Below, piece after piece: positions 8,159-44,516 of a stretch of 64,000 nucleotides of DNA (position 1 is its first letter; each line of letters starts with the position of its first letter). A program made the translations under genes and the position numbers. The stretch lies in the sequence record NC_048045.1. One strand, 5' to 3'. The notes under the pieces are model-generated. The model made no database searches. It was given only the letters and a program-made list of their open reading frames with translations, and was not told where the DNA came from.

Positions 8159-8202
8159 TTGACAAGGAGGCGGTGGTCCCTTAGAAGGGCGGCGACGACA
8201 AC
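8159..8202 (+). promoter_or_regulatory. repeated promoter P1
   Basis: TTGACA-17-TAGAAG, GACGACAAC 8194-8202, then GGAGG. Confidence 0.8.
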
Positions 8203-8216
8203 GAAAGGAGGCGCCG

Positions 8217-8516
8217 ATGCGCTACGTTCTGGAGTACATGGACTGCGACGACCAGATCGTCCAGGTCGACTTCGAGGCCGCCACCCGCGCCTCGGCGATC
8301 GCCAAGGCCAAGCGCCTCTTCGTGAAGGCGGTCGAGGCCAGCGGTCGGTCGATCTTCACCGGCTATATGTTCGAGGACCACTCGATCACCATGAAGGTGA
8401 AGCTGGTCCCGTTCGGCACCCTGAGCCGCTACCTGGGTCTGGGCAAGGTCACCGTCGCCAACATCGCGTTCGACGACCGCGACGCCAAGATCGCCCGCCA
8501 GGACATGGCCGCATGA
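8217..8516 (+). CDS. hypothetical protein
   Basis: AAGGAGG RBS after P1. Confidence 0.85.
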   Translation: MRYVLEYMDCDDQIVQVDFEAATRASAIAKAKRLFVKAVEASGRSIFTGYMFEDHSITMKVKLVPFGTLSRYLGLGKVTVANIAFDDRDAKIARQDMAA

Positions 8517-8725
8517 TCAGGGTCGAGGACGTCAAGCCCGGCTTCATCTATCGCGGCGGCAAGGGCGGCGCCCTGCGCCAAGTGGTCAGCTACGGCGCCC
8601 ACGAGGGCTTTGTCTGCTGGGCCAACCCGCACGATCGCCTGCCCTATGGCGGGTTCCTCACCACCACCTGCACCAGCCGGGCGTCGTTCGCCCGCTGGGC
8701 CGACAAGATCGAGGAAGAGGTTTGA
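8513..8725 (+). CDS. hypothetical protein
   Basis: ATGA overlap with upstream gene. Confidence 0.75.
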   Translation: MIRVEDVKPGFIYRGGKGGALRQVVSYGAHEGFVCWANPHDRLPYGGFLTTTCTSRASFARWADKIEEEV

Positions 8726-9012
8726 TCACCACCTTCCTACGCTGCACCCACCGCGACGCCGAGGGGCGTCGGTACCTGGAGTTCCGCGAGCCAGACCTCG
8801 TCCAGCGTCTCTATGTGCGCAAGCCGGCCGACGATTGGACCCAGGGCTACCCTATCGTCCTGGAGGACTTCTACAGTGGCTCGCCCGGCGGCAAGACCCT
8901 CTTCCAGGCCGGCAAGCGCCGGGGCTGCGGCATCGGAGCGTTCTTTCGCGCCTACCCCGAGGTCTACAGCCTCATCGTTTTGCGCCAGGAGGCACTCGAT
9001 GCCCAGGTCTAA
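8722..9012 (+). CDS. hypothetical protein
   Basis: TTG start overlapping upstream stop. Confidence 0.75.
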   Translation: MITTFLRCTHRDAEGRRYLEFREPDLVQRLYVRKPADDWTQGYPIVLEDFYSGSPGGKTLFQAGKRRGCGIGAFFRAYPEVYSLIVLRQEALDAQV

Positions 9013-9262
9013 GCGCCCCAACCTGCCGATCACCGTCGCCGACCTCAAGGCGTTCCTGGAGAAGTTCCCGGACGACATGAAGGTCGGCATCCGCGCCGGC
9101 GGCGGACGCTTCACTGGCTTCACCGAGGTCGAGGTCAAGAACCTCACCTCCTACGGCGCCGAGAAGGATCGCCTGACCATGGAGACCTCTCGCGGGGCCA
9201 ACATCTTCAAAGGCTACAAGGGCAAGATTTCCGAGCCCTTCGACGCCCTGATCTTCGACTAG
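8999..9262 (+). CDS. hypothetical protein
   Basis: GGAGG upstream of ATG 8999. Confidence 0.75.
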   Translation: MPRSKRPNLPITVADLKAFLEKFPDDMKVGIRAGGGRFTGFTEVEVKNLTSYGAEKDRLTMETSRGANIFKGYKGKISEPFDALIFD

Positions 9263-9270
9263 GAGGGACC

Positions 9271-9525
9271 ATGAGCAATCGCGTTTGGATCGAACTCGAA
9301 AAGCCAAAGACGGCCGAGGAAGGCAAGGCGCGCGCCGCGCTTCTCTGCAAGATGCTCGGCCGGCTGGGCGTCGAGTTCGGCCGCTATCCCGCCGTGTTCT
9401 GGAGTGAGCGCGACGGCAACTACGCCTTCACCCTCGATGGCGGTGGCAGCTACGCCGTCTGCGAGGGCGCTGATCCTGGCCACTGGTACAACCTGGACTA
9501 CATAGTGGAGGGGCTCGAAGCGTGA
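9271..9525 (+). CDS. hypothetical protein
   Basis: GGAGG RBS. Confidence 0.8.
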   Translation: MSNRVWIELEKPKTAEEGKARAALLCKMLGRLGVEFGRYPAVFWSERDGNYAFTLDGGGSYAVCEGADPGHWYNLDYIVEGLEA

Positions 9526-9920
9526 CCCAGGACACCTTCCCGCCGATCCGTTCCCGCGAAGCCAGGGACGAGGAAATCCATGGCTTCGTCGTCCGCTACG
9601 GCTGGTTCTGGAACGTGGTGATGCTGAACGGCGACATCCTGGCGTTCGACCCCGACGACGTCGATCCGTGCCGCTACGGCGTGACCGACAAGGACGCCTT
9701 CCGCAACCTCGCCGGCCCGGTCGAGACGATCGTCTCCTACGAGTGCGTCCAGGGCTGGCACGCCAAGGCCAAGCACCTGTCGGGCTGGACCGAGCGCCAC
9801 GACGACCGCCTCGAAGCCCTGCGCACGGCCTATCGCCGGCTGGAGGCGCAGCGCGAGCGCAACTCCAAGGCTCTGGAGGAGCACGGCGGCATCTTCAAAT
9901 TCCTGGAGAAGCAGGACTGA
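9522..9920 (+). CDS. hypothetical protein
   Basis: GTGA overlap. Confidence 0.8.
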   Translation: MTQDTFPPIRSREARDEEIHGFVVRYGWFWNVVMLNGDILAFDPDDVDPCRYGVTDKDAFRNLAGPVETIVSYECVQGWHAKAKHLSGWTERHDDRLEALRTAYRRLEAQRERNSKALEEHGGIFKFLEKQD

Positions 9921-9921
9921 C

Positions 9922-10113
9922 GTGCTGACCAACGAGGAGATCACCTTCGCGGGCCTGATCCGGGCCATGGAGGACGCCCGCCGCGAAGCCCGCGCGGTGG
10001 GCGATCTCCTCAAGTCCGCCGAGATCGACGGCTGGTTCAAGGAGCACGCGCCGATCATCCGGGCGATCCGCGACAAGGCCGAAGCCGACGAATTCGACAA
10101 TCCGTTGGCGTGA
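9922..10113 (+). CDS. hypothetical protein
   Basis: Packed array. Confidence 0.7.
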   Translation: MLTNEEITFAGLIRAMEDARREARAVGDLLKSAEIDGWFKEHAPIIRAIRDKAEADEFDNPLA

Positions 10114-10163
10114 GAGTGTTGACAGCCTCGCCGCGCCCGGTTAAAAGCCTCCTCGACGACAAC
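10104..10163 (+). promoter_or_regulatory. repeated promoter P2
   Basis: 18-mer GTTGGCGTGAGAGTGTTG, TTGACA 10119-17-TAAAAG, GACGACAAC 10155. Confidence 0.8.
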
Positions 10164-10177
10164 GCAAGGAGCCTGTC

Positions 10178-11341
10178 TTGACCGATTTCCCGATCATCCG
10201 CGCCGCCATCGAAGGCCGCCGCGCCGCCGCGTTCGACACGATGCTGGCCAATGCCGACGCCTTCGCCGCCGAGGGCGTGCTGATCAAGGCCGAGTTCGAG
10301 GACATCAAGGGCGTCTTCACCCGCTGCATCGACGCGGCCTGGGAGGTCGTGCGCAAACGCTACTTCTTCATCGACCACGCCCTGCGCACCAAGGAAGTCG
10401 AGGACCTCTTCTGGAGCTTCTCGATCCCCTACCCGCACGTCCTGCCGGGCTACCTGAAGAAGACCCTGGCGGCCAAGAACATCCCGTCCAACGTCCGCGA
10501 GGACCTCGTGGCCCTGTTCAACGAGGGCATCGCCCTCAACGACAAGCTGGTGGCGCTCAAGCCCCTGATCGGCAAGCGCGCGCCCAAGAAGACCAAGGTC
10601 GAGATCGAGCGCGAGGGCAAGGAGCGCACCTGCCAAATCTGCGGTCGCGGCATCCTGGCCGAGGGCGGCACCATCGCCCACCACGGCTATACCCGTCCCG
10701 GCTACGGCTGGCAGACCGCCTCCTGCTCAGGCGCCCGCGAGGTCCCGTTCGAGATCAGCCGCGACGAACTGCGCAAGGAGATCGAGGCCCTCAAGGCGTG
10801 GCGCGTGCGCAAACTCGCCGAGCGCGCCCGGATCGAGGCCGAGGAAGTCAAGCTGGTGCTGAAGTATCAGGTCTCCGAGCAGGACCCGCGCCGCGCGCAG
10901 GGCTTCAAGCTGACCGTCGATCGCCAGATCGAAGTCACCCGCGACACCTTCGAGGCCCTGAAGGTCTCCACGCCCGAGGCCTTCTCGGGCAAGTACAACC
11001 CCCGCAAGGAGGGCAAGTACACCTACGAGGCCCTGACCTTCGATGGTCTCAAGACCCAAGCCATCGGCATGGTCGACATCGAGATCGGCCGCCTGGACAC
11101 TGACATCCTCCGCCAGCAGGCCCGCTATGACGGCTGGACCCAGAAGGCGATCTTTGGCGCCGGCCGCTATTGGTTCATCGGCGAGACGGTCCGCGTCCCC
11201 GGCGGCGACACCGGCAAGATCAAGGGCTTCTACCAGCACGTCCCGCCGCAGCCCGGCGACATCGCCGGCGGCCTCTACCTGGAGCAGGAAGCCGGCGGCC
11301 ACAAGTCCTGGAACGTGGCCGAACTGGAAGCGGTGGGCTGA
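10178..11341 (+). CDS. hypothetical protein (387 aa) with central Cys/His cluster
   Basis: TCQICGR...IAHHGY...TASC; strong codon bias. Confidence 0.85.
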   Translation: MTDFPIIRAAIEGRRAAAFDTMLANADAFAAEGVLIKAEFEDIKGVFTRCIDAAWEVVRKRYFFIDHALRTKEVEDLFWSFSIPYPHVLPGYLKKTLAAKNIPSNVREDLVALFNEGIALNDKLVALKPLIGKRAPKKTKVEIEREGKERTCQICGRGILAEGGTIAHHGYTRPGYGWQTASCSGAREVPFEISRDELRKEIEALKAWRVRKLAERARIEAEEVKLVLKYQVSEQDPRRAQGFKLTVDRQIEVTRDTFEALKVSTPEAFSGKYNPRKEGKYTYEALTFDGLKTQAIGMVDIEIGRLDTDILRQQARYDGWTQKAIFGAGRYWFIGETVRVPGGDTGKIKGFYQHVPPQPGDIAGGLYLEQEAGGHKSWNVAELEAVG

Positions 11342-13194: not shown

Positions 13195-13201
13195 ACACTC
13201 C

Positions 13202-13261
13202 GCTGGCGTTAGAGTGTTGACAGTCGTCGGGGCCTCCTCTATAGACACGCTCGACGACAAC
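13202..13261 (+). promoter_or_regulatory. repeated promoter P3
   Basis: 18-mer GCTGGCGTTAGAGTGTTG, TTGACA 13217-17-TATAGA, GACGACAAC 13253. Confidence 0.8.
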
Positions 13262-13273
13262 GAGGAGGCCCCG

Positions 13274-15055
13274 ATGACCACCGAGACCATGACCCTGAGC
13301 TTCCGGATCGAAGGCGCTGCGCTCGTTGAGCGCGCCCGCGATCGCGTCATCGAAGGCAACTGGGAGCACGGCCTGCGCATCCTCGTCGAGGGTCTGCACG
13401 GCATGACCTATGACTACGCCATCGACATCCTCAGGGGCAAATACACGCTGGGCGGCTGGTCCTCGGACCCCGAGGGCGTCTATCTCGCCGACCAGGACCC
13501 CGAGGACGAGACCTTCAGGCGCTACAAGGAGACCTTCGACTACCAGTTCGGCGCCGTCCTGAAGATGGACGATGGTCGCATCATGCGGCCCTACGCGGTG
13601 GTCGACAGCTACTCCAAACTCGATTTCGATTCGCGCGTGCGCCACCTGCGCCTAGCCCCCGGCTCGGACCCGGTCCACGTCCGTCCCAAGCGGTTCCGTG
13701 ACGTGCGCGCCGAACTCGATGGCGAGCAGATCGACTGGGCCTATCGCTCGCTCCACTACGCCGACAACCCGACCCAGGACATCGCCAAGCTGGTGACGCT
13801 GGACGGATATCACCCGACCCACCGGATGGTCGTGCTGTTCGAAGAGGTCCGGGACTACCCCAAGCTCCTGAAGCCGTCGGTCGAGACCGACGCCCAGAAG
13901 GTGGTCGATCTGGCCCTAAAGTGCGGGCGCGGGCTCAACAAGCGCGGGCACATCTACGATCACGGCGAGCCGGGCGTGACGGACGAGTACATGTACGGCA
14001 CGACCAAGACGGTCGACAACGTCCCCGGCGCCTGGACCCTGCGGAACCCGAACTACATCGCCCCCGCCACCGCGAGCCTGACCGAGGCTGTCGCCGGCGC
14101 CAACAAGGTCTCGGCCGTCAAGGCGATCGAAGCCGTCGGCGGCCCTATGGACGAGGTCGGAGCCATGAACCGGCTGATCAAGGATCAGGTCGACGAGGGC
14201 ATGACCATCAGCGCGGCCATCGACATCGCCCGCGCCCGCATGGCTCTCATGGGCGGCATGGCCGAGGACCCAGAGCAGCGCCTGCGGGCGATCAACGACG
14301 CCTACGCCGCCAAGTATGAGCGGGCCGAGGGCCGCAGCGTCGAGGAGTACCGCAAGGCCATCCTCGCCCAGGCCGGCGACGACTTCTTCGATCTCGCGTA
14401 CACGGATGTCGACGGCAAGGACGTCGTCCTGAAGGTCCCGACCGCGCCGTTCGAGCAATGGGCTCTGTGGCGCACGGCCGGCTCCCACCTCGCCAAGCCT
14501 TGGAAGCGGGTGACCTACACCGGCTTCAAGATGTTCGGCGATGATCCCTACCACACCGACTGGGTGCTGGGCGCGGGGCTCAATCCCGAGGACTGGCCGA
14601 TCGTGGAGAGCGACAACCCGCCGCTCCACAAGGCCGCCTGGGACAAGCGCTTCCAGCTTGCCGAGGAAAAGCTGGGCGGCAACATGCGCGTCCTGCTTGG
14701 CAAGGGCTTCGTGACCGGCAAGATCGTGATGCTCAAGCCGGGCGAGACCCTATCGCCGGGCGAGATCGGCGTGATCCGCAACGCCGGCCCCGACTTCGTC
14801 CAGGCCGCCCAGAGCGCGATCGAGCACAACACCGCCCTGATCTGCGAGAATGGCGGCAGCGTCGCCCACCTCGTGGTCGAGTACCTGGACAAGCCGCTGC
14901 GCCTGACCCGGATCGAGAACGCCCGCAAGATTTTCAAGGACGGCATGACCGTCTACCTCGACTTCGACAAGTCGACGCGCACGATCGCCAAAGGCGGCCT
15001 GGGGCCGAGCCCCGCCGACCTGGGCCTGGACTCCGAATGGGAGATTGAAGAGTGA
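13274..15055 (+). CDS. 593-aa protein with C-terminal PEP-utilising enzyme mobile (phosphohistidine swivel)-like domain
   Basis: VTGKIV...GEIGVIRNAGPDF...ALICENGGSVAHLVV...IENARKIFKDGMTVYLDF matches the swivel-domain pattern with its His; N-terminal ~480 aa unrecognised. Confidence 0.7.
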   Translation: MTTETMTLSFRIEGAALVERARDRVIEGNWEHGLRILVEGLHGMTYDYAIDILRGKYTLGGWSSDPEGVYLADQDPEDETFRRYKETFDYQFGAVLKMDDGRIMRPYAVVDSYSKLDFDSRVRHLRLAPGSDPVHVRPKRFRDVRAELDGEQIDWAYRSLHYADNPTQDIAKLVTLDGYHPTHRMVVLFEEVRDYPKLLKPSVETDAQKVVDLALKCGRGLNKRGHIYDHGEPGVTDEYMYGTTKTVDNVPGAWTLRNPNYIAPATASLTEAVAGANKVSAVKAIEAVGGPMDEVGAMNRLIKDQVDEGMTISAAIDIARARMALMGGMAEDPEQRLRAINDAYAAKYERAEGRSVEEYRKAILAQAGDDFFDLAYTDVDGKDVVLKVPTAPFEQWALWRTAGSHLAKPWKRVTYTGFKMFGDDPYHTDWVLGAGLNPEDWPIVESDNPPLHKAAWDKRFQLAEEKLGGNMRVLLGKGFVTGKIVMLKPGETLSPGEIGVIRNAGPDFVQAAQSAIEHNTALICENGGSVAHLVVEYLDKPLRLTRIENARKIFKDGMTVYLDFDKSTRTIAKGGLGPSPADLGLDSEWEIEE

Positions 15056-15524: not shown

Positions 15525-15525
15525 C

Positions 15526-16807: not shown

Positions 16808-17031
16808 TCGATCACGTCTACCGCCGCGATCCGCGCGGCAAGGACTACGGCGTCCAGCGGATGGACCTGGGCGAGGCCCTGGCGGTGGTCGCCGCCGAGA
16901 AGCAGGACTTTCTCCTGCGGCTCGTCGAGGTCCTGCACGAGAACAATCTCCTGCGCGACGCAGACGTCCTGGAATTGCTCGGCAAGGGCTGGGGCCTGGA
17001 GGCCTACGACGTCCTGTACGAAGACGATTGA
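16804..17031 (+). CDS. hypothetical protein
   Basis: GTGA overlap. Confidence 0.7.
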   Translation: MIDHVYRRDPRGKDYGVQRMDLGEALAVVAAEKQDFLLRLVEVLHENNLLRDADVLELLGKGWGLEAYDVLYEDD

Positions 17032-17072
17032 CAACACTCTCGCGCCAGCATAGAGGTGTCTCCGACGACAAC
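17028..17072 (+). promoter_or_regulatory. repeated promoter P4 (operator motif inverted, in spacer)
   Basis: TTGACA-17-TAGAGG; CAACACTCTCGCGCCAGC 17032-17049; GACGACAAC 17064. Confidence 0.8.
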
Positions 17073-17085
17073 GAAGGAGGCTTCC

Positions 17086-17457
17086 GTGAAGCTCGCGACC
17101 CAAGACCGGACCGATCCCCGCCTGAACGCCGACTACCGCCTGATCAAGGCGGTCTTCTACTACGGCGGCCCGGCCGAGTACCCGATCCACCTGGACGAAC
17201 GCTGGAGCGCGGTGACGCCGGCCCAGGTCGAGGACCAGATTTCGGCCCTCTGCCGCGATCTCGCCAAGTGCTCGGGCAACACCCTGGCGCCGGCGACCTT
17301 CTACGAGCGCGCCAAGCTGAGCTTCGCCGAGGTCCCGCCGGTGTCCGACGAGTTCTGGGGCCTGATCTCCGAGACCACCAAGCAGAACATCCTCGCCATG
17401 AAGGATCGCTTCACGGTCCACGGCAGCGGCTTCCTCCTGTCCTGGGCCAAGGCCTGA
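17086..17457 (+). CDS. hypothetical protein
   Basis: GTG start after GGAGG. Confidence 0.8.
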   Translation: MKLATQDRTDPRLNADYRLIKAVFYYGGPAEYPIHLDERWSAVTPAQVEDQISALCRDLAKCSGNTLAPATFYERAKLSFAEVPPVSDEFWGLISETTKQNILAMKDRFTVHGSGFLLSWAKA

Positions 17458-18499: not shown

Positions 18500-18559
18500 G
18501 CTGGCGTTCTTGTGTTGACAGCGACCCTCATGCGGGCCTAGAACGTCATCGACGACAAC
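18500..18559 (+). promoter_or_regulatory. repeated promoter P5
   Basis: GCTGGCGTTCTTGTGTTG, TTGACA 18515-18-TAGAAC, GACGACAAC 18551. Confidence 0.8.
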
Positions 18560-18572
18560 AAAGGAGCCCCGC

Positions 18573-18929
18573 ATGCCGCTGTATGATTTCCCGACCGGCC
18601 CGACCACGATGGAGGACATCGAAGCGTTCGTCGCCGGTGCCCAGGCGGTGGTCAACGCCCAGATGGCGAAGGCCTTCCCGAACGTGAGCCCGCCGGTCCT
18701 GACGATCGAGCCGATCCGCCCCAACACCCAGTTCGCCAAGATCGTGTCGAGCGACCGCTCGCAACGCTCGGTCTGGGCTTTCGTTCGCCTGGAGGACGGC
18801 CTGATCTACAAGCCCTCGTCGTGGAAGGTCCCGGCCAAGCACGCGCGCGGCACGATCCATACCGCGTCCTTCGGAGCCGAGTACGTCGACTGGACCGGCC
18901 CGCGCTACATCAAGGACCTGCGCCCGTGA
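18573..18929 (+). CDS. hypothetical phage protein
   Basis: AAGGAG RBS; FAKIV...SVWAFV...GLIYKPSSWKVPAKHARG. Confidence 0.85.
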   Translation: MPLYDFPTGPTTMEDIEAFVAGAQAVVNAQMAKAFPNVSPPVLTIEPIRPNTQFAKIVSSDRSQRSVWAFVRLEDGLIYKPSSWKVPAKHARGTIHTASFGAEYVDWTGPRYIKDLRP

Positions 18930-19186
18930 GCGTCTTCACCGTCATCCTGTCGCAGTACGACGAGCAGCGCTTCTACATCGTCGAGGCCGGCAACAACATC
19001 AATGCCCTGGCGCACGCCAAGCGGGTCGCGGAGTCCCATGACGACAACGGCTCGATCTGGAAACTCGACATGATGTTCGTCGGCGCGCCCGACCTCGCGA
19101 TGAAGGCCCAGGGCCTGAAGGTCATCGACCTGCGCGCGACCGTCCATGAGCCCGTTCCCCACGCCCAGCGGGGAGGCGGCTGCTGA
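18926..19186 (+). CDS. hypothetical protein
   Basis: GTGA overlap. Confidence 0.7.
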   Translation: MSVFTVILSQYDEQRFYIVEAGNNINALAHAKRVAESHDDNGSIWKLDMMFVGAPDLAMKAQGLKVIDLRATVHEPVPHAQRGGGC

Positions 19187-25404: not shown

Positions 25405-25457
25405 TTGACAACACTCTCACGCCAACATAGAACCCTCCTCGACGACAACGAGGAGGG
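25405..25457 (+). promoter_or_regulatory. repeated promoter P6 (inverted operator; RBS hairpin)
   Basis: TTGACA-17-TAGAAC; CAACACTCTCACGCCAAC; CCCTCCTC-GACGACAAC-GAGGAGGG stem-loop. Confidence 0.82.
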
Positions 25458-25461
25458 CCAT

Positions 25462-25881
25462 ATGGCTTACGACATTCCCGACCTGAGCGTGTTCACGTTC
25501 ACCGACCCGTCGATGGAGAGCTTCGCCAAGGCTATGGTCTCGATGATCGAGGCCAACCAAGCGATCATCGACCAATTCGCCGAGAGCCTGAGCAAGGACC
25601 CGATCCGCGCGCTGGAGCGCAGCCTGTCCGTCAAGCTGGCGGCCGTCCGCCAGAGCGAAGCCAACGATGCCCTGGGCCATGTCCTGGACACGCTGCTGCA
25701 CGGTGACGACAAGACCTGGGCCTACACCAAGCTCCAAATCCAGCAGTCGCTCACCTACCATGTGGTCTACGCCGCCGCGCACCCGTCGCGGTCGACCTGC
25801 GCCGAGACCAACGACATGGCGCGCTTCGAACTGCAAGCCAAGGCCGAGATGCTCGACCGCCTGATGAAGGGTCGCTTCTAA
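25462..25881 (+). CDS. hypothetical protein
   Basis: GAGGAGG RBS. Confidence 0.85.
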   Translation: MAYDIPDLSVFTFTDPSMESFAKAMVSMIEANQAIIDQFAESLSKDPIRALERSLSVKLAAVRQSEANDALGHVLDTLLHGDDKTWAYTKLQIQQSLTYHVVYAAAHPSRSTCAETNDMARFELQAKAEMLDRLMKGRF

Positions 25882-26810: not shown

Positions 26811-26870
26811 CTTGGCGTTTGTGTGTTGACAGGGCAAGTCCGGTTCTGTAGACCTCTGCTCGACGACAAC
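26811..26870 (+). promoter_or_regulatory. repeated promoter P7
   Basis: CTTGGCGTTTGTGTGTTG, TTGACA 26826-17-TAGACC, GACGACAAC 26862. Confidence 0.8.
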
Positions 26871-26882
26871 GAGGAGGCCCCC

Positions 26883-27089
26883 ATGCCGCATCTGAGCAAG
26901 CAGTCCTACAGCTTCGGCTACACCAGCGACGCCCTGGCGGCGGCCGGCGAGTTCGAAGCCCTGACCACTGAGTTCTATCGCTACGAGACCCGCTACCTCT
27001 ACGACGCGTCTCGCGCGATCGTCGGCGTCGAGGTCCGCGTCATGGACGAGGACGGCTTCTTCGTCGGCTACGTCGCGGGCGAGGTCTAG
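26883..27089 (+). CDS. hypothetical protein
   Basis: GAGGAGG RBS. Confidence 0.8.
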   Translation: MPHLSKQSYSFGYTSDALAAAGEFEALTTEFYRYETRYLYDASRAIVGVEVRVMDEDGFFVGYVAGEV

Positions 27090-30194: not shown

Positions 30195-30252
30195 TTGACA
30201 ACACTCTAACGCCAACATAGAAGGGCCTCCGACGACAACGCCGGAGGCCCTT
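30195..30252 (+). promoter_or_regulatory. repeated promoter P8 (inverted operator; perfect 11-bp hairpin over RBS)
   Basis: TTGACA-17-TAGAAG; CAACACTCTAACGCCAAC; AAGGGCCTCCG-ACGACAACGC-CGGAGGCCCTT. Confidence 0.82.
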
Positions 30253-30255
30253 TTC

Positions 30256-30594
30256 ATGCAAGCCGAGAACTACACGCAGAACCTGAGCGACTGGTCCCAG
30301 TACCGCAACAACGGGCGCGGCGGCTGCGGCCTCAAGCGCGCCGAGGGCACAATCTCCAAGCGCGCCTATGAGCGGCTGATCCGCGAGGCCAAGCGCGACT
30401 TCCTGTCGGGCTTCGACATCGACTGGTCCAAGTACGGCGAGCCGACCGTCACCTTCTACGACATGCTGACCGCCCAGATCGAGTGGCCTAACCTGAAATC
30501 GGGTCAGTTGATCACGCTGACCCATATTTGGTTCGAGCGGAAGACCGGCGAAATCCTCCAGGCCGGCTCCAACCACGGGAGCCTGACCCTGTGA
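30256..30594 (+). CDS. hypothetical protein
   Basis: GGAGG RBS after P8. Confidence 0.8.
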   Translation: MQAENYTQNLSDWSQYRNNGRGGCGLKRAEGTISKRAYERLIREAKRDFLSGFDIDWSKYGEPTVTFYDMLTAQIEWPNLKSGQLITLTHIWFERKTGEILQAGSNHGSLTL

Positions 30595-31552: not shown

Positions 31553-31611
31553 GTTGGCGCGAGAGTGTTGACAGAAGCGTCCTGACGCCATAGAACCCTC
31601 TCGACGACAAC
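31553..31611 (+). promoter_or_regulatory. repeated promoter P9
   Basis: GTTGGCGCGAGAGTGTTG, TTGACA 31568-17-TAGAAC, GACGACAAC 31603. Confidence 0.82.
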
Positions 31612-31624
31612 GAAGGAGGCCCCG

Positions 31625-32011
31625 ATGGGCGCGCAACTGGAAATCAAGGAAGTCTTCGCCGCCTCGCAGGACGCCGTCTATTCCTGGCGTGGCGAGGAAG
31701 GTGACGAGTATCGCGTGATGAGCCTCGTTCACGTCCAGACGATGGACGGCCGCTGGTTCCTGATGCCGGCCATGCGTCCCTACTCGGACGTCGAGCGCTT
31801 CGACTTCGAGATGGCCTGCGAGGGCGAACCCCTCTTCGGCATGGCGATCGTCTACTGGGACGCCGAGGCCTTCGCCGCCAAGGTCCGCGCGCGGGGCGTG
31901 ATCCGCCCGGAGTTCTGGGTCGAGTACGAGCCCGACACCCGCACGACCGAGCAGCGCTTCGAGGACATGTGGATCGAAGAGCAGTACGACCGCATGGGGT
32001 ACGCCGCATGA
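31625..32011 (+). CDS. hypothetical protein
   Basis: AAGGAGG RBS. Confidence 0.85.
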   Translation: MGAQLEIKEVFAASQDAVYSWRGEEGDEYRVMSLVHVQTMDGRWFLMPAMRPYSDVERFDFEMACEGEPLFGMAIVYWDAEAFAAKVRARGVIRPEFWVEYEPDTRTTEQRFEDMWIEEQYDRMGYAA

Positions 32012-33299: not shown

Positions 33300-33631
33300 C
33301 CGACTACGACGCCTGCCTGACTAACTGGGTCGTCTGCCTGACGCCGATCCCGGTCGTCGTCCGGGGCGACGCCGCGCCCGAGCCGGGCGTGGTGCTCGTC
33401 GGCGAGATCATGCAGGACCGGAAGGGGCGCTGGCCGGACGGTCGTCTCGTTCACACCTCGGTGCTCCTGAGCGCGCGGGCGCTGATCAAGCCGGGCGAGG
33501 TCGTGCGCACCCTGCGCAGCCACTACCTACTGGGCCGGCCCGCCGAGGAGATCACCCTGCGCCATAGCTTGGGGGCTATGTTCGCCCAGGTCGTCATCCA
33601 ACCGCTTGACAACACTCTCGCGCCAACCTAG
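33296..33631 (+). CDS. hypothetical protein
   Basis: ATGA overlap; LVGEIMQDRKGRWPDGRLVHTS. Confidence 0.75.
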   Translation: MTDYDACLTNWVVCLTPIPVVVRGDAAPEPGVVLVGEIMQDRKGRWPDGRLVHTSVLLSARALIKPGEVVRTLRSHYLLGRPAEEITLRHSLGAMFAQVVIQPLDNTLAPT

Positions 33632-33650
33632 AAGGGTCGTCGACGACAAC
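33606..33650 (+). promoter_or_regulatory. repeated promoter P10 (inverted operator)
   Basis: TTGACA-17-TAGAAG; CAACACTCTCGCGCCAAC; GACGACAAC 33642. Confidence 0.82.
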
Positions 33651-33653
33651 GCC

Positions 33654-33683
33654 TGTCCGAAATTTGTACACATTTTTCGGACA
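33654..33683. promoter_or_regulatory. AT-rich inverted repeat in the P10 leader
   Basis: TGTCCGAAA-TTTGTACACATT-TTTCGGACA. Confidence 0.55.
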
Positions 33684-33698
33684 TCAGAGGAGGTCCCG

Positions 33699-34127
33699 AT
33701 GAGCTACCGCGAAGCTGAGATGGAAGCGCAAGCCGACTTCCACGCCAACGAGATGAACGTCGGCGACGGCGCCTGGGGGCGCTACGTCAAGACGCTGGAG
33801 AAGCGCCTGGGCTTCGACCTAGACGGCGACAACTCCGAGGAGGCCAAGGGCTTCTTCTGCGACATGGGCCACTCGCTCGACGACACCTTCGAGATGTTCG
33901 AGAAGGGCGTGTCGGTCGCCGACGCCGAGAAAGCGATCCTGCGCTCGTGCGCCTCGGCCGCCGCGCGCGCCGCCGACGCCGGCGTCCAGGCCCTCTGCGA
34001 GGCTCAGGACCGCGCCAAGGCGGCCGGCAAGACCGACTACGTCGATCTGCTGGAAAAGCAGATCAACGCCCTGCTGGACGAACAGAGCGCCGCCGCCACG
34101 GCGGCCGAGAAAGCGTTCGGCTGCTGA
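33699..34127 (+). CDS. hypothetical protein
   Basis: GAGGAGG RBS. Confidence 0.85.
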   Translation: MSYREAEMEAQADFHANEMNVGDGAWGRYVKTLEKRLGFDLDGDNSEEAKGFFCDMGHSLDDTFEMFEKGVSVADAEKAILRSCASAAARAADAGVQALCEAQDRAKAAGKTDYVDLLEKQINALLDEQSAAATAAEKAFGC

Positions 34128-34952: not shown

Positions 34953-34953
34953 C

Positions 34954-36066: not shown

Positions 36067-36083
36067 GCCTTGGCTGCAATGTG

Positions 36084-36129
36084 TTGACAAGCGGACGCGG
36101 CCTCCTGTAGAAGACTCCTCGACGACAAC
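36084..36129 (+). promoter_or_regulatory. repeated promoter P11
   Basis: TTGACA-18-TAGAAG, GACGACAAC 36121. Confidence 0.8.
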
Positions 36130-36140
36130 AGGAGGCCCAC

Positions 36141-36623
36141 ATGCCCGACACCTCGAACTTCGACGCCGCCGTCCTCGTGGGCGTGGAGATCATCAAGACC
36201 AAGCCCGAAGGGCTCACCGCCCTGGAAGCCGTCCAGCGGTTCCAGCACCAGTCGCCGGACTTCGTCGAACTCGTCACCCGCTTCAACAAGCTGACTGCCG
36301 CGCTGCCGGCGGTGGTCAACGGCCACCACCTGCAATCGACCTGCGCCAAATGGGTGTTGGACGAGTCCCAGCAGCGCATCACCCTGCCGTTCGAGACCAT
36401 CGCCCAGCGCGTGGAGTTCTACGCCAAGCAGATGACGATCCCGGCCTACGCCTACCTGATGGATCGCTACAAGGAGCGCCTCGACAGCAAGATCGCCACC
36501 GTGCGCGGCTGTCTGGAGGACCAGAACTACCTCGGCGCCAGCTACAACCTCCTCGACCTGGAGGAGACCTTCCAGGAGATGGTCGACCGCCACGACGATC
36601 TCGTCTCGGACGGCTACCCCTGA
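36141..36623 (+). CDS. hypothetical protein
   Basis: AGGAGG RBS. Confidence 0.85.
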   Translation: MPDTSNFDAAVLVGVEIIKTKPEGLTALEAVQRFQHQSPDFVELVTRFNKLTAALPAVVNGHHLQSTCAKWVLDESQQRITLPFETIAQRVEFYAKQMTIPAYAYLMDRYKERLDSKIATVRGCLEDQNYLGASYNLLDLEETFQEMVDRHDDLVSDGYP

Positions 36624-36956: not shown

Positions 36957-36966
36957 CAGGTGCGTC

Positions 36967-37491
36967 ATGGGCCTGACGGGGTGCGGCTTCGCGCTCCTGA
37001 CGGCCGGCTCGGTCGCCTACGCGGTTGACCGTGGGGGCAGGGCGCTCAAGACGAGCGGCCTGCTCCTGTTCGCCACCTGGGCGTTCTCGGTCACCATCGG
37101 CTCGACCCTCGTGGCGGGCAACAAGCCCTACGTCTATGCCTGGGTGGACGGCATGTTCGCCGGCGCCGTTGGGGTGATGCTCACCGCGCGGTTCCAGCGC
37201 TGGCGGGCTGGGCTGTTCGCCCTGGCGATCCTCCAGATGTTCCTCCACCTCGCCATGATCGGCATCTGGGATTTCTCCCTGGCCGCGCGGCGGCTTCATG
37301 TCTTCTCGCTCAACCTCACCTACGCCCTGGAACTCTTCGTCCTCACCATCGGAGCGGCGGCCTATCGTCCAGGCGAGCGCGACGACGTGCCCGAGATCAT
37401 CGAGGTCCAGCACCACATCGTCGGCAAGGATGACGGGACCCTGCTCTACTGGCTTGAGTGTGTTGACAAAGCCAGACGTCCCGTCCTATAA
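36967..37491 (+). CDS. multi-pass membrane protein (about 5 TM)
   Basis: VAYAVDRGG motif followed by successive hydrophobic helices. Confidence 0.8.
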   Translation: MGLTGCGFALLTAGSVAYAVDRGGRALKTSGLLLFATWAFSVTIGSTLVAGNKPYVYAWVDGMFAGAVGVMLTARFQRWRAGLFALAILQMFLHLAMIGIWDFSLAARRLHVFSLNLTYALELFVLTIGAAAYRPGERDDVPEIIEVQHHIVGKDDGTLLYWLECVDKARRPVL

Positions 37492-37507
37492 GCACCTCGA
37501 CGACAAC
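37463..37507 (+). promoter_or_regulatory. repeated promoter P12
   Basis: TTGACA-18-TATAAG, GACGACAAC 37499. Confidence 0.8.
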
Positions 37508-37519
37508 GAGGAGGCCAGC

Positions 37520-37951
37520 ATGCCCACGCCCAAGACCGCAACGATCTCCCGCGCGCTCGCCTACTTGGCGATCACCGGCGGCACGAACTGCCTCACGATC
37601 AACACCCGGATCGCCCTGCACCCCTATCACGATCTGGTCCCGGTCAAGTACAAGATCGGCGACACCGAACTGACCCGCCACGTCTACAAGCTCACCGACG
37701 AGGGCCGCGCCCTGGCCGAGAAGAGCAAGCTCTGGAAGGGTCATCAGAAGCTCGTCGAGATGGGCTTCACGTTCAAGCCGTCCAAGCGCCGCCAGTCCTC
37801 GCGCTTCCTGTCCTATGACCACGCGACCGACGATTGCCGCAAGGATCGTCGCGGCGCGTTCATCTCGGGCGACAGCCCCTACGCCCAGCCGGCGCCGGGG
37901 CAGACGCCCGAGGGCAAGAAGGACTGGGACTACATCAAGGTGGAGGTCTAA
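37520..37951 (+). CDS. hypothetical protein
   Basis: GAGGAGG RBS; YKLTDEGRALA wing-like motif. Confidence 0.85.
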   Translation: MPTPKTATISRALAYLAITGGTNCLTINTRIALHPYHDLVPVKYKIGDTELTRHVYKLTDEGRALAEKSKLWKGHQKLVEMGFTFKPSKRRQSSRFLSYDHATDDCRKDRRGAFISGDSPYAQPAPGQTPEGKKDWDYIKVEV

Positions 37952-37954
37952 GCC

Positions 37955-39383: not shown

Positions 39384-39384
39384 C

Positions 39385-42098: not shown

Positions 42099-42099
42099 C

Positions 42100-42516: not shown

Positions 42517-42800
42517 TGCCCAAGCTCTGGAACAAGCCTGTCCCGCTGAAGGCCCAGCCGATCCCCTACCAGATCGAGCGCTACCTGCTCGACCACCGCG
42601 ACGTGCGGCTGGTGCGCGGGCGTGATGGTTGGTTCAGACTCCAGGGCCGAACCGGCGTCAACCACTTCTCCCGCGTGCCTGGATCGGGGCGCTATTCGGC
42701 GCGCACGGCGCTGCAATGCGTCGACAGCCTTTGCACGATCGAGTCCTACGACGACCGCAACCGGCCCGACATCATCGGCCTGCATCGGGACGTCATCTGA
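42516..42800 (+). CDS. hypothetical protein
   Basis: TGATG coupling. Confidence 0.7.
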   Translation: MPKLWNKPVPLKAQPIPYQIERYLLDHRDVRLVRGRDGWFRLQGRTGVNHFSRVPGSGRYSARTALQCVDSLCTIESYDDRNRPDIIGLHRDVI

Positions 42801-43165
42801 TGTGGTTCGATCCCAAGGTCCGCGCCCGGCGCCTGATGCTGCCCCGCAACGACGGCAAGTTCCGCTTCAACGGCGACGACTTCCCGTCGCTGATCTGCGC
42901 CGCCACGGCCGCCGTGCTGACCGACAGTATGTGGCAGAGCTTCGACCAGCATCCGATCCTGCTGCGTCGGACTGACAGCGACTTCCAACTCGATTGCGAT
43001 CCTATCGGCCTGGAGGAAGATCGCCTGCTGTTCGACCAGGACATCGTGATCTCCAACCGCATCGCCATGAAGCTTGTCGAGATGGGCTACCTGCTCGTCG
43101 TGACCAACACCGAGCGCGGCGCGCCCCAGCGCCTGGAGGTGGCGGACGTGGAGCGTCGGACGTAA
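42800..43165 (+). CDS. hypothetical protein
   Basis: TGATG coupling. Confidence 0.75.
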   Translation: MWFDPKVRARRLMLPRNDGKFRFNGDDFPSLICAATAAVLTDSMWQSFDQHPILLRRTDSDFQLDCDPIGLEEDRLLFDQDIVISNRIAMKLVEMGYLLVVTNTERGAPQRLEVADVERRT

Positions 43166-43446
43166 TGGCGAGGTCGCGTGTACGCGGCGCCCGAGGGCGC
43201 CGGCGCTTTGTCGAGGTGCGCGAGCAGCTTCAATGCGGCCCCTGGAAGCACCTGATCCGGGCCTATCGCGGCTGGCGGCGCTATAACCCCGAGACCGGGG
43301 CCATGGACATGTCCGAGCGCTACAGCAACGAGACCATTCAGCGCATGGTGACCAGCGGGACGCTCGACGTCCACGAGTTCGACGAAGACGGCGTGGTCCA
43401 GGTCTATCGCCTGGGGGCCAGCTTCATCGGCTGGCGGTCGTCATGA
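43165..43446 (+). CDS. hypothetical protein
   Basis: TAATG coupling. Confidence 0.7.
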   Translation: MARSRVRGARGRRRFVEVREQLQCGPWKHLIRAYRGWRRYNPETGAMDMSERYSNETIQRMVTSGTLDVHEFDEDGVVQVYRLGASFIGWRSS

Positions 43447-43790
43447 ACTGGCAGGCCCACCCCTACTACGCCCAGTTGGGCTTCTCGCCTCATCAAGCGC
43501 GCTACTGGGATGTCGAGAAGGCCATGGTGCTCAACCTGTGGGATGACATCGGCCGCGTTGGCGGGCTCGAAGAGCCCAGCCACTGGAAGCTCGTCTGGCG
43601 GCCCTTGCAAGTGGGCCGTGAAGGGCGATATGTCCTGGTCACCGCCCAGGCGGGGATCGCCTACCCCATGGCGTATCCGAAGGGCTATCGCGGCGCGATC
43701 GTGCAGATCGCCGCCGACGAGGACACCCGGCTGCGGCCGACGGCGCGGGACGAGACAGGGCGGGTTCTGGAGTACCGGGGCATCCAGTGA
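43443..43790 (+). CDS. hypothetical protein
   Basis: ATGA overlap. Confidence 0.7.
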   Translation: MNWQAHPYYAQLGFSPHQARYWDVEKAMVLNLWDDIGRVGGLEEPSHWKLVWRPLQVGREGRYVLVTAQAGIAYPMAYPKGYRGAIVQIAADEDTRLRPTARDETGRVLEYRGIQ

Positions 43791-44407
43791 AGAGCGATTG
43801 GCGCGAGACCTTGGCGATGGCGTTCGACCGACCTCTCCCCGTGGAGGCGCCGGCCGATCCCTATGCCTTCGACCCCAACGCGCCGCCGCTGATCCTCGAC
43901 TTGACCCCCGAGGAGAAGCTGTCGCTGACCGAGTGCCGCTGGGCGGCGCTGGACGCGATGGGCGAGGTGATCGGCGAGTTCTGGGCGATCCCCCAGGCCG
44001 CCGAGGGTCTGGCCCATATGCTCTATCCGGGGCTGGCGGCCTATGCGCGCGGTGGTCATCGCGGGCGCCTGAAGGCCAAGCGCCTGCGCCGGCTCTGCGA
44101 GGCCCAGAACTGGCGCTGCTGCTACTGCCATGGGGCGATGCGGCTCCCCGACGAGTGCGACAGCCCCAACGAGCCGGATATGGCGACCCTGGAGCACGTG
44201 CATCGTTCGACCGACGGCGGCGGGAGCACCTGGGACAACCTGATCGCCGCCTGCCAGACCTGCAATTCCCATCGCGGCTCGGTCACGCCGCTCAAGTGGT
44301 GGAAGCTGCGTCAGAAGCTCCTCCCGGTCTGGCCCGCCTGCTCGACGATCACCGAGGCGGCGCGTTACGCCCTGCGCGGCTATGGCCTGCTGCGACGCGG
44401 CTGGTAG
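43787..44407 (+). CDS. HNH endonuclease domain protein
   Basis: LCEAQNWRCCYC...ATLEHVHRSTDGGGSTWDNLIAACQTCNSHRG. Confidence 0.9.
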   Translation: MKSDWRETLAMAFDRPLPVEAPADPYAFDPNAPPLILDLTPEEKLSLTECRWAALDAMGEVIGEFWAIPQAAEGLAHMLYPGLAAYARGGHRGRLKAKRLRRLCEAQNWRCCYCHGAMRLPDECDSPNEPDMATLEHVHRSTDGGGSTWDNLIAACQTCNSHRGSVTPLKWWKLRQKLLPVWPACSTITEAARYALRGYGLLRRGW

Positions 44408-44409
44408 GG

Positions 44410-44458
44410 TACAACCGTTTTTGGTTGTAAAGGCGTTTTACAACCGTTTTTGGTTGTA
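44410..44458. repeat. two identical 20-bp palindromic operator-like sites
   Basis: TACAACC-GTTTTT-GGTTGTA at 44410-44429 and 44439-44458. Confidence 0.85.
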
Positions 44459-44469
44459 GCGCGACTGTG

Positions 44470-44516
44470 TTGACGGGGTTACGAAAACAGACTAGATGTA
44501 GGGCCTCGACGACAAC
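44470..44516 (+). promoter_or_regulatory. repeated promoter P13
   Basis: TTGACG-17-TAGATG, GACGACAAC 44508. Confidence 0.75.

Follow-up and report, generated by a model that had tools for sequence, protein, structure and literature searches.

An invariant 9-mer at early promoters

The window analyzed here comprises 64,000 nucleotides of NC_048045.1 and makes up the rightmost 64 kb of CcrBL10, a Caulobacter phage related to phiCbK. The 9-mer GACGACAAC occurs 15 times in this window, 14 times on the + strand and once on the - strand; shuffled sequences held a mean of 0.6 + strand copies and at most 4. Thirteen of the 14 + strand copies lie 6 to 9 nt past the -10 box of a host-type promoter and just 5' of an SD, and one leftward promoter carries a variant:

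8159..8219, + strand, P1: -35 at 8159-8164, -10 TAGAAG at 8182-8187, 9-mer at 8194-8202, SD at about 8206-8210, ATG at 8217
10119..10180, + strand, P2: -35 at 10119-10124, -10 TAAAAG at 10142-10147, 9-mer at 10155-10163, TTG start at 10178
13217..13276, + strand, P3: -35 at 13217-13222, -10 TATAGA at 13240-13245, 9-mer at 13253-13261, ATG at 13274
17028..17088, + strand, P4: -35 at 17028-17033, -10 TAGAGG at 17051-17056, 9-mer at 17064-17072, GTG at 17086
18515..18575, + strand, P5: -35 at 18515-18520, -10 TAGAAC at 18539-18544, 9-mer at 18551-18559, ATG at 18573
25405..25464, + strand, P6: -35 at 25405-25410, -10 TAGAAC at 25428-25433, 9-mer at 25441-25449, ATG at 25462
26826..26885, + strand, P7: -35 at 26826-26831, -10 TAGACC at 26849-26854, 9-mer at 26862-26870, ATG at 26883
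30195..30258, + strand, P8: -35 at 30195-30200, -10 TAGAAG at 30218-30223, 9-mer at 30231-30239, SD at 30243-30247, ATG at 30256
31568..31627, + strand, P9: -35 at 31568-31573, -10 TAGAAC at 31591-31596, 9-mer at 31603-31611, ATG at 31625
33606..33701, + strand, P10: -35 at 33606-33611, -10 at 33629-33634, 9-mer at 33642-33650, SD at 33687, ATG at 33699
36084..36143, + strand, P11: -35 at 36084-36089, -10 TAGAAG at 36108-36113, 9-mer at 36121-36129, ATG at 36141
37463..37522, + strand, P12: -35 at 37463-37468, -10 TATAAG at 37487-37492, 9-mer at 37499-37507, ATG at 37520
44470..44532, + strand, P13: -35 TTGACG at 44470-44475, -10 TAGATG at 44493-44498, 9-nt gap, 9-mer at 44508-44516, ATG at 44530
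4622..4683, - strand, leftward cassette: -35 at 4683-4678, -10 TAAGAG at 4660-4655, variant GACGACGAC at 4648-4640, GTG at 4624

The 13 rightward cassettes share one layout: TTGACA, 17 to 18 nt, a TAGAAG-like box, 6 to 7 nt (9 nt in P13), and GACGACAAC, with the SD 0 to 5 nt farther downstream. The exception is P10, in which the 9-mer is followed by a 57-nt leader; a hairpin within this leader (about 33655-33683) is kept in Rogue, Karma, and phiCbK. A first-pass annotation of this DNA had described the motif as starting 12 to 13 nt after the first -10 base (15 nt in P13), ahead of the SD, and this description was borne out. The P4 spacer contains an inverted upstream element (ACACTCTCGCGCCA), and a classical terminator (44422-44446) lies upstream of P13. 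The whole CcrBL10 genome contains 21 9-mer cassettes, whose -35 and -10 boxes match the Caulobacter RpoD consensus, TTGaCgS / GCtANAWC (PMC8144410).

Two copies of GACGACAAC do not belong to the system. That at 19040-19048 (+ strand) is intragenic, has no promoter, and reads in frame as Asp-Asp-Asn codons; that at 53736-53744 (- strand) lies inside the terminase gene, where the + strand reads Val-Val-Val. Chance therefore suffices to explain both.

All nine positions were unchanged in 18 to 21 orthologous cassettes in each of Rogue, Karma, and phiCbK, including the orthologues of P1, while spacers and discriminators diverged around them (about 78% overall identity). Such alignments indicate that every position of the 9-mer is under purifying selection. 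The base 5' of the motif is always a pyrimidine, and its own first base is a purine. We infer that GACGACAAC forms the first nine transcribed bases at about 21 host RNA polymerase promoters, so that each operon driven by them would open with the same short leader, followed by the SD.

What might hold these bases constant? Perhaps, as the first bases transcribed, they are tuned to RNA polymerase itself, through start-site choice or fast promoter escape, or they are a leader that aids translation or stability with no RNA acting in trans. The pyrimidine-purine step resembles favored start sites, the -35 boxes are near consensus, where escape can limit output, and the 9-mer is A/C-rich and intrinsically unstructured (unpaired probability, 0.61). 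However, neither escape nor accessibility in general needs a single exact 9-mer, and Colossus, which infects the same host, has a different one. We regard this explanation as very unlikely.

The 9-mer might instead be a DNA operator, spanning +1 to +9, through which a phage or host protein shuts off or activates all early promoters. Repressor operators typically lie over the start site, genes for several HTH proteins and for a GcrA homologue are located in the phage early region, and early-gene expression in phiCbK peaks at 15 min and then declines (PMC10688885). Moreover, next to the -35 box of the cassettes lies another conserved DNA element, TGGCGnGAGAGTG, so these promoters do bear protein-type sites. 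Yet the 9-mer is not palindromic and forms no clean direct repeat, invariance at every position is unusual among protein sites, and no candidate binding protein was identified. An operator is, in our judgment, quite unlikely.

Hairpins between promoter flanks and ribosome-binding sites

The first-pass annotation had proposed that the 9-mer is the loop of hairpins that hide the SD in read-through RNA and so act as a promoter-specific translation gate. In a swap test, native pairs of upstream and downstream flanks were more stable than swapped pairs (means of -11.3 and -8.3 kcal/mol; permutation p = 1.5e-4 in CcrBL10 and 3.5e-4 in Karma). Flank complementarity is promoter-specific. The effect was bimodal, strong in about 8 of 21 cassettes and nil in about 10; P7 and P9 (ranks 11 and 19 of 21) showed no specific stem in this test. 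The stems in the window are as follows:

13229..13272, + strand, P3 hairpin: 11 bp, GGGGCCTCCTC at 13229-13239 (promoter spacer) with GAGGAGGCCCC at 13262-13272 (SD)
18529-18575, + strand, P5 hairpin: 8 bp, CATGCGGG at 18529-18536 with CCCGCATG at 18568-18575, covering the start codon AUG
25433-25457, + strand, P6 hairpin: perfect 8 bp, CCCTCCTC/GAGGAGGG, with the 9-mer as its loop
30221..30256, + strand, P8 hairpin and T-tract: AAGGGCCTCC, 12-nt loop GACGACAACGCC, GGAGGCCCTT, then TTTC
36099-36137, + strand, P11 hairpin: 8 bp, GGCCTCCT at 36099-36106 (spacer) with AGGAGGCC at 36130-36137

The 8-bp stem of P6 was as previously described, and 7 to 8 of its bp are retained in Rogue, Karma, and phiCbK. 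The stem of P8 (30221-30252), previously given as a perfect 11 bp, likewise exists; it has 10 Watson-Crick pairs and can be extended with G.U and A-U. The stems of P3, P5, and P11, with 5' arms in the -35/-10 spacer, were absent from the earlier description. That of P3 (native ddG, -26.0; rank 1 of 21 in the swap test) has the -10 box and the 9-mer in its loop; in Karma both arms have changed, and pairing is only partly retained. The P5 stem also ranked 1 of 21 and was not found in the Rogue or Karma orthologues; hence, it is lineage-specific. In P11 (rank 2 of 21), both arms are kept in Rogue, Karma, and phiCbK, while adjacent spacer bases vary.

The first-pass annotation had named covariation in related phages as a check, and the P8 hairpin displayed it: across CcrBL10, Rogue, Karma, Colossus, and Kabachok, 7 of 14 pairs have compensatory double changes. 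This hairpin sequesters the SD and contains the predicted start site, and it is also terminator-like. Its orthologues are annotated as rho-independent terminators in the phiCbK, Karma, Swift, and Colossus records, and a paralogous copy lies at record position 135337 (- strand). Given this annotation and the T-tract, the P8 stem may end read-through transcripts rather than gate their translation.

Predicted SD accessibility was lower in the read-through context (median, 0.19) than at internal genes (0.31; p = 0.04) and rose to 0.39 when RNAs were folded from +1; the predicted start sites lie inside the stems. These data support, in part, hairpins that would occlude the SD or AUG only in upstream-started RNA, as real features of a subset of cassettes. 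They leave the invariant loop unexplained, because about half of the cassettes lack a specific stem and yet keep the 9-mer unchanged. A loop needs no fixed sequence, yet here the loop is invariant while the stems vary, some being lineage-specific, and the flanks exposed the 9-mer no better than shuffled flanks did.

In phage T4, hairpins on early read-through mRNA keep the genes e (lysozyme), soc, 49, and I-TevI silent. The CcrBL10 stems are similar in that they sequester the SD or AUG and enclose the predicted proximal start site, which leaves the proximal transcript without the 5' arm; this holds for about 8 of the 21 cassettes, and one orthologue group shows covariation. However, T4 combines an early upstream promoter with a late internal one, whereas both belong to one class in CcrBL10; the early-versus-late logic is therefore missing, and a gate would have no temporal role. 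Gating thus survives for a subset of stems but is weakened as an explanation of the motif: we think it unlikely that the 9-mer is merely the loop of a hairpin, whether that hairpin gates translation or terminates read-through.

A candidate small RNA gene with the complement of the leader

The only intergenic, nonpromoter copy of the 9-mer in the genome is a reverse complement at record positions 52176-52184. It falls within a promoter-to-terminator unit of about 97 nt:

52,131-52,227 of the record, outside the window, + strand, candidate sRNA gene: unannotated, between the tRNA cluster and the PhoH gene

The unit has its own promoter, a 5' hairpin domain, a single-stranded linker, and a terminator. 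The linker, GUUGUCGUC, complements the 9-mer exactly and is preceded, immediately on its 5' side, by the anti-SD stretch CCUCUGC. The unit is kept in each of the 26 records from the phiCbK, Rogue, and CcrBL10 clades, and none has an annotated CDS in it; in CcrSC, no homologue is obvious at the syntenic position. The -35 and -10 boxes of its promoter are kept around a diverged spacer, the 5' hairpin covaries (GGGGCC/GGCCCC versus GGACC/GGTCC), as does the terminator stem, and 21 nt (GAGCYTCTGCGTTGTCGTCAG) are invariant. The predicted fold (-62.4 kcal/mol; z = -5.4) places the anti-9-mer in the unpaired linker. Two promoter variants of the 9-mer, GACGACAGC (in the P2 orthologues of Karma and phiCbK) and GACGACGAC, are A-to-G changes that would retain G.U pairing with the linker, a weak argument since A-to-G is also the commonest kind of mutation.

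Could this complementarity be a by-product of ancestry, the sRNA locus being a decayed inverted copy of a cassette kept similar through gene conversion rather than by selection for pairing? Its minus strand does read as a leader plus SD (GACGACAAC-GCAGAGG; in Colossus, TGACGATCAGGAGG). However, that strand has no upstream promoter and no start codon past the SD-like stretch, while the + strand has a promoter and a terminator, with a + strand T-tract, conserved in four lineages. Identity to the cassettes extends over only 9 to 17 nt, too small a tract for gene conversion, the flanks are unrelated, and the structured domains covary as in a functional RNA. Such an origin strikes us as highly improbable. 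A DNA operator, for its part, does not predict a complementary, co-varying linker in a conserved sRNA gene, and an initial sequence tuned for polymerase leaves it unexplained.

Leader-linker co-variation and proposed control of early operons

Before the sRNA locus of Colossus was read, co-variation of its leader and linker had been set as a test. Among the early promoters of this phage, about half have TGACGATC(A) at +1 (12 of 24 exactly, the remainder being GACGAwCA variants), and the linker of the syntenic sRNA, CCUCCUGAUCGUCAAG, is the exact complement of this leader and is accompanied by an anti-SD. Leader UGACGAUCA and linker UGAUCGUCA have changed together; from base composition, the chance of finding the 8-mer in an RNA of roughly 105 nt is about 1e-3. 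The Kabachok linker is CCUCCGUCGUCAAG, and leaders in that phage begin with GACGAC or close variants. In Bajun the linker is GUCUCCUUUCAUCCGUCGUCAGA and all leaders begin with (G)ACGAC, those at 31945, 33174, and 48006 also matching the extended GAU..GAAAGGAGAC; the prediction for Bajun had been made before it was tested. The GACGAC/GUCGUC core is retained in two Brevundimonas phages. The clades offer few contrasts, with two clear states of the motif and two further lineages that have only the core in common. Predicted duplex energies for cognate leader and linker were -27.8 (CcrBL10) and -25.4 (Colossus) kcal/mol, versus -23.4 and -20.7 kcal/mol for cross-clade pairs (p of about 1e-3 each way) and -14.6 kcal/mol for internal ribosome-binding sites (p = 5e-12). 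Leaders of Colossus, Kabachok, and Bajun are less uniform than those of the phiCbK clade, so invariance in that clade may partly have another cause.

Because the conserved linker exactly complements the motif and changes in step with it from one phage genus to another, the evidence favors an RNA as the molecule that reads the 5' signal. The first-pass suggestion of a 5'-end signal read by a phage protein or nuclease was thus closer in its signal than in its reader; alternatively, a protein may bind the same 9-mer in DNA or RNA. On balance, we lean toward the 9-mer being the target tag, or landing site, of one phage-encoded anti-leader sRNA, with this role as the reason for its invariance. Some 20 early operons share nine letters whose exact complement the sRNA exposes; hence, one RNA probably controls them all. 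The anti-SD adjoining the linker suggests that it probably represses them. Pairing would begin at the exposed 9-mer, a free 5' end in RNA from the proximal promoter and usually a hairpin loop in read-through RNA. It could then spread over the SD, keep ribosomes from binding, and probably hasten decay. Flank-to-SD hairpins would add a second, cassette-specific layer in about 8 of 21 cassettes, silencing the first cistron in read-through RNA or terminating that RNA where a T-tract follows. The sRNA promoter of CcrBL10 resembles the early class; sRNA and targets may therefore be co-produced, as would suit a damper or a timer more than a clean shutoff late in infection.

How does this arrangement compare with known systems? 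We know of no matching trans RNA in the hairpin system of T4, unlike which the CcrBL10 loop is an invariant 9-mer matched by such an RNA, and the best CcrBL10 hairpin is also like an intrinsic terminator. The T4 endoribonuclease RegB and translational repressor RegA are proteins that recognize GGAG or AU-rich sites. As with these, one phage factor would turn down many early mRNAs jointly through a short common signal near the ribosome-binding site; unlike them, the putative CcrBL10 factor is an RNA that would base pair with the 9-nt tag plus the SD. The likeness is one of mode of action, not of family membership.

The antisense RNAs of temperate phages (c4 of P1 and P7, sar of P22, and OOP of lambda) are encoded in cis or processed from the target operon, and each acts on one gene (ant or cII). 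The proposed sRNA would similarly be a small phage RNA that pairs with a leader or ribosome-binding region and blocks expression, but it lies about 60 to 150 kb from its targets, would reach roughly 20 of them via a common tag, and belongs to a virulent giant siphophage. Trans-encoded bacterial sRNAs that have anti-SD seeds, such as the alphaproteobacterial alpha-r14/NfeR1 family (Rfam RF02344), resemble the proposed sRNA in length (about 100 nt), in having a promoter of their own and an intrinsic terminator, and in combining an exposed seed with a C/U-rich anti-SD; its many predicted targets, like theirs, all lie at ribosome-binding sites. The proposed sRNA differs in that these targets are the phage's own operons, marked by a dedicated tag that lies outside the SD. 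Nor does it belong to that family: the CcrBL10 sRNA scored 20.8 bits against a threshold of 58.8, and none of four orthologues matched. If the proposal is correct, CcrBL10 would have a single RNA switch for all of its early operons, one that most likely dampens or shuts off early expression.

The 9-mer and its promoter class

The window is identical to the final 64 kb of NC_048045.1, with window position equal to record position minus 156,934; coordinates refer to the window unless marked as record positions. Its source, CcrBL10, belongs to the genus Poindextervirus and is a phiCbK-like siphophage with a genome of 221 kb. Small hypothetical genes make up a long rightward block (8,100-47,000), which diverges from a leftward block whose genes include a GcrA homologue. 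The last 9.7 kb (54,292-64,000) form the right copy of a long terminal repeat and match record 1-9709 exactly; the gene for the terminase large subunit extends into this copy, and an intein is annotated in this gene in relatives.

The 9-mer GACGACAAC occurs 14 times on the + strand of the window and once on the - strand, against 0.6 copies expected. Thirteen of the + strand copies share one layout, which we call a cassette: TTGACA, 17-18 nt, a TAGAAG-like box, 6-7 nt, the 9-mer, a Shine-Dalgarno (SD) sequence and a start codon. The gap between box and 9-mer is 9 nt at the last rightward promoter, compared with 6-7 nt at the others. The distance from the 9-mer's first base to the start codon is 20-25 nt, with the exception of cassette 33642, which has a 57-nt leader. 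All 13 cassettes combine TTGAC[AG], a 17-18 nt spacer and a C-preceded TAnAnn box (e.g. cTAGAAc), and so agree in sequence and spacing with the Caulobacter RpoD (sigma-70/sigma-73) consensus TTGaCgS / GCtANAWC (PMC8144410). Judged by its spacing from the -10 box, the 9-mer should be the first bases transcribed. The remaining copies, at 19040 (+) and 53736 (-), fall within genes, as runs of in-frame codons. One leftward cassette carries a variant:

4683-4622, - strand: leftward cassette with GACGACGAC in place of the 9-mer

Across the whole CcrBL10 genome we counted 21 cassettes of this type, and 18-21 per 100 kb were found in each of the Caulobacter phages Rogue (93% identical), Karma and phiCbK (78%). 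There the 9-mer is kept and the spacers and discriminators have diverged, the rare variants being GACGACAGC and GACGACGAC. A simple promoter scanner is blind to these promoters because it demands T at the final -10 position. In IMG/VR scans for the cassette, only single chance-level matches and two isolated look-alikes (phage segments L195 and L209) were recovered beyond CcrBL10, Rogue and Karma. The papers searchable here contained no description of this promoter class or of any phiCbK-group small RNA.

The annotated start of gp124 at 37463 (record 194397) is the TTG of a -35 box; its true start is likely the in-frame ATG at 37520, behind an SD, which makes the protein 19 codons shorter. In assembled RNA-seq contigs of phiCbK infection (four runs, reached through a Karma locus), lengths are 23-45 kb and breaks fall only at repeated promoter sequences. 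Since contigs end or branch exactly at repeated cassettes (e.g. 5697-5749 of the Karma segment L039), we regard such ends as assembly artefacts and not as transcript ends. No run with CcrBL10 RNA was found among public RNA-seq data.

Hairpins between promoter flanks and the SD

The rightward block has a single classical terminator, at 44422-44446 (an 11-pair stem followed by TTTTT), directly 5' of the last cassette. Elsewhere in the block operons adjoin without terminators, and read-through is therefore expected. The first-pass annotation had proposed that hairpins with the 9-mer as their loop hide the SD only in such read-through RNA, as a translational gate with a precedent in phage T4. The stems it listed are all present, and we found three more with the 5' arm inside the -35/-10 spacer. 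Perhaps these were no more than chance pairings in G+C-rich DNA? As a control for this, the upstream 45 nt of each cassette was joined to the downstream part of every other cassette. Native combinations gained more folding energy than chimeras (-11.3 versus -8.3 kcal/mol), with permutation p values of 1.5e-4 for CcrBL10 and 3.5e-4 for Karma. The effect was bimodal: about 8 of the 21 cassettes ranked first to third, and about 10 of 21 showed nothing. Predicted SD accessibility in the read-through context had a median of 0.19 for promoter-proximal genes versus 0.31 for 74 internal genes (p=0.04), and rose to 0.39 for the promoter-proximal genes when their RNA was folded from +1.

The stem at 30221-30252 is the one orthologue group with covariation. 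In CcrBL10, Rogue, Karma, Colossus (a further Caulobacter phage) and the Brevundimonas phage Kabachok, a 14-pair stem is kept, and in 7 of the 14 pairs both partners have changed. In each of the five phages the stem has a T-tract behind it, and several records annotate a rho-independent terminator. The combination of G+C-rich stem and T-tract is seen at 30221-30256 and at a paralogue at record 135337 (-), albeit with a loop of 12 nt, and not at the other cassettes. Record 135337 (-) and window 30218-30258 share an identical -10-to-ATG segment, including the terminator-like hairpin, on opposite strands and ahead of different downstream genes; the pair is a duplicated regulatory module. Of other stems, 36099-36137 is conserved without covariation and 18529-18575 is lineage-specific. 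In cassette 33642, the 57-nt leader has a hairpin of its own (TGTCCGAAA...TTTCGGACA) in the stretch between 9-mer and SD (33651-33698). This hairpin is kept in Rogue, Karma and phiCbK and may regulate that gene in cis as a separate RNA element.

A T4-type gate is thus supported in part. About 8 of the 21 cassettes have a predicted stem that occludes the SD or AUG and has its 5' arm upstream of the predicted transcription start, with covariation in one orthologue group; elsewhere such a stem is absent. A further element of the T4 parallel, a difference in temporal class between upstream and internal promoters, appears not to hold on promoter sequence, as neighbouring promoters are all of one architecture. 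Nor did we find that the flanks are selected to expose the 9-mer: its unpaired probability was 0.61 with native flanks and 0.58 with shuffled flanks, which is not significant. Its exposure would come from its own A/C-rich sequence, with nothing added by the flanks. We conclude that the hairpins are real but form a cassette-specific layer. The 9-mer is invariant with and without stems, and hence the stems do not explain the invariance of the loop.

A predicted small RNA gene complementary to the 9-mer

All copies of the 9-mer in the CcrBL10 genome were listed and sorted by context. Only one copy is both intergenic and outside a promoter. It is a reverse complement, found on the + strand at record 52176-52184, with the tRNA cluster on one side and the gene that precedes PhoH on the other, and it lies within a predicted small RNA (sRNA) gene that has counterparts in Colossus and in Kabachok and Bajun, both Brevundimonas phages.

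The sRNA gene and its counterparts
CcrBL10 record 52,131-52,227 (outside the window), + strand: unannotated sRNA gene, conserved in the phiCbK, Rogue and CcrBL10 clades
Colossus/CcrPW, segment L231, about 24467-24580: counterpart
Kabachok, segment L235, about 19953-20052: counterpart
Bajun, segment L238, about 2316-2425: counterpart

The unit consists of TGTGTTGACA, 17 nt, TACAAC, a 7-nt discriminator and about 97 nt closing with a strong hairpin. Across the phiCbK, Rogue and CcrBL10 clades, every one of the 26 records has it, at 79-96% identity; it is annotated as 'terminator' in 3 of them, otherwise not at all, and never as a CDS. In four lineages it has its own promoter and a same-strand T-tract terminator with no annotated CDS, as an independent gene would. 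An alignment of seven phages shows conserved -35 and -10 boxes with a diverged spacer between them; the 5' hairpin covaries (GGGGCC/GGCCCC, GGGCC/GGCCC, GGACC/GGTCC), as does the terminator stem; and the 21 nt between the two, GAGCYTCTGCGTTGTCGTCAG, are invariant. The predicted fold of the CcrBL10 RNA has an energy of -62.4 kcal/mol (z = -5.4), and GUUGUCGUC, the complement of the 9-mer, is an unpaired linker in both single and consensus folds. The linker is thus predicted to be a conserved single-stranded seed flanked by covarying helices. Together with the adjacent CCUCUGC, it can form a predicted duplex of -20 to -32 kcal/mol with any of the leaders, covering 9-mer, following G and SD; internal ribosome-binding sites average -14.6 kcal/mol against the same linker. 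Rfam holds no family for this sRNA: a match to alpha-r14 (RF02344) scored 20.8 bits against a threshold of 58.8 in CcrBL10 and gave no hit in four orthologues, and we attribute it to chance.

Co-variation between tag and linker had been fixed as the test before the Colossus locus was inspected, and the Bajun leader was likewise predicted ahead. In Colossus the +1 motif differs, being TGACGATC. A like unit stands at the syntenic site after the last tRNA, and its linker CCUCCUGAUCGUCAAG combines an exact complement of UGACGAUCA with an anti-SD; in the predicted fold this linker is unpaired between the 5' domain and the terminator. The Colossus 'TTCTTTACA' promoter class numbers 24, of which 12 have exact TGACGATC 7-8 nt after the -10 box and the others GACGAwCA variants. 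The matched pairs are GACGACAAC and GUUGUCGUC in the phiCbK clade, UGACGAUCA and UGAUCGUCA in Colossus. A leader is predicted to bind its cognate linker 4-5 kcal/mol more stably than the linker of the other clade, and this holds in both directions (p about 1e-3). Kabachok and Bajun share only the core of tag and linker. Kabachok has a unit at the same site with linker CCUCCGUCGUCAAG, and most of its leaders, which are less uniform, begin with GACGAC or close variants (e.g. GACAACGACGG). In Bajun, 8 of 8 early promoters found begin (G)ACGAC, and the leaders at 31945, 33174 and 48006 also fit the extended GAU..GAAAGGAGAC predicted from the linker. In phage CcrSC, the syntenic site after the tRNA cluster holds a terminator hairpin only, with no UCGUC linker and no obvious homologue.

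The 9-mer may instead be an operator for a protein or an initial transcribed sequence optimised for promoter escape, or the sRNA locus may be a relic inverted cassette. None of these rival readings predicts a co-varying complement within a structured, promoter-to-terminator RNA gene. Two further ideas, that the 9-mer might be complementary to 16S rRNA and that its complement might represent T7-type primase sites, found no support here. Nor did a link to the phage GcrA homologue, as Colossus lacks GcrA (PMC3556154) and Bajun has GcrA but looser leaders.

Among the promoters there is a second conserved element, TGGCGnGAGAGTG(TTG), which takes two orientations, either just 5' of the -35 box or inverted (CAACACTCTCnCGCCA) between -35 and -10. 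It is also found in Bajun early promoters and, in a reduced form (TGGC), in the CcrBL10 sRNA promoter, and is probably a protein-binding site.

The second promoter element in the window
10103-10118: forward, 5' of the -35 box
25411-25426: inverted, in the spacer
30201-30216: inverted, in the spacer
33612-33627: inverted, in the spacer
17034-17047: inverted, in the spacer

Colossus early promoters have an invariant GTTTCTTTACA block across the spacer and -10 box (segments L224, L232 and L233), and their Kabachok counterparts carry cATTCCTTTACA. The sRNA promoters of Colossus and Kabachok are without this block, and the sRNA may therefore be regulated differently from its targets.

A possible sRNA switch for early genes

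The simplest account of these sequences would be that the 9-mer serves as a tag through which the sRNA base-pairs with the leader, and that tag and linker co-evolve. The tag would be reachable in both contexts, as a free 5' end in proximal transcripts and as a loop in read-through RNA. The anti-SD beside the linker points to translational repression, probably with faster decay. Such repression would agree with the reported drop in phiCbK early transcripts from 15 min onwards (PMC10688885). We put forward tentatively, at just under even confidence, a broader proposal: that one phage sRNA controls all early genes post-transcriptionally, as their master switch, across the Dolichocephalovirinae, the subfamily of phiCbK-like giant siphophages with Caulobacter and Brevundimonas hosts, reading the first 6-9 nt of every early mRNA together with its SD, and that tag and seed co-evolve as lock and key between genera.

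The pairing is directly testable: the RNA is about 100 nt and the tag 9 nt, compensatory mutations are readily designed, and an infection RNA-seq series exists (GSE241057). Cassette (promoter, tag and SD) and sRNA together would give Caulobacter a portable expression module that can be switched. The genomes of this phage group need corrected annotations: 'terminator' hairpins overlap promoters, at least one CDS is made to start at a -35 box, and none of the records includes the sRNA gene.

phiCbK, which has roughly 130 early genes to time, serves as the standard phage for work on the Caulobacter cell-cycle model. If the proposal is true, a single RNA would reach about 20 operons by way of one 5' tag that all of them carry. 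For a virulent phage this would be a new and simple way to control gene timing, comparable to T4 RegB/RegA but based on RNA. Targets are known for few phage sRNAs, and this one would join them as a multi-target, self-directed case; these phages would also be the first virulent ones in which a temporal class of the phage's mRNAs bears a shared 5' tag through which an sRNA controls it.
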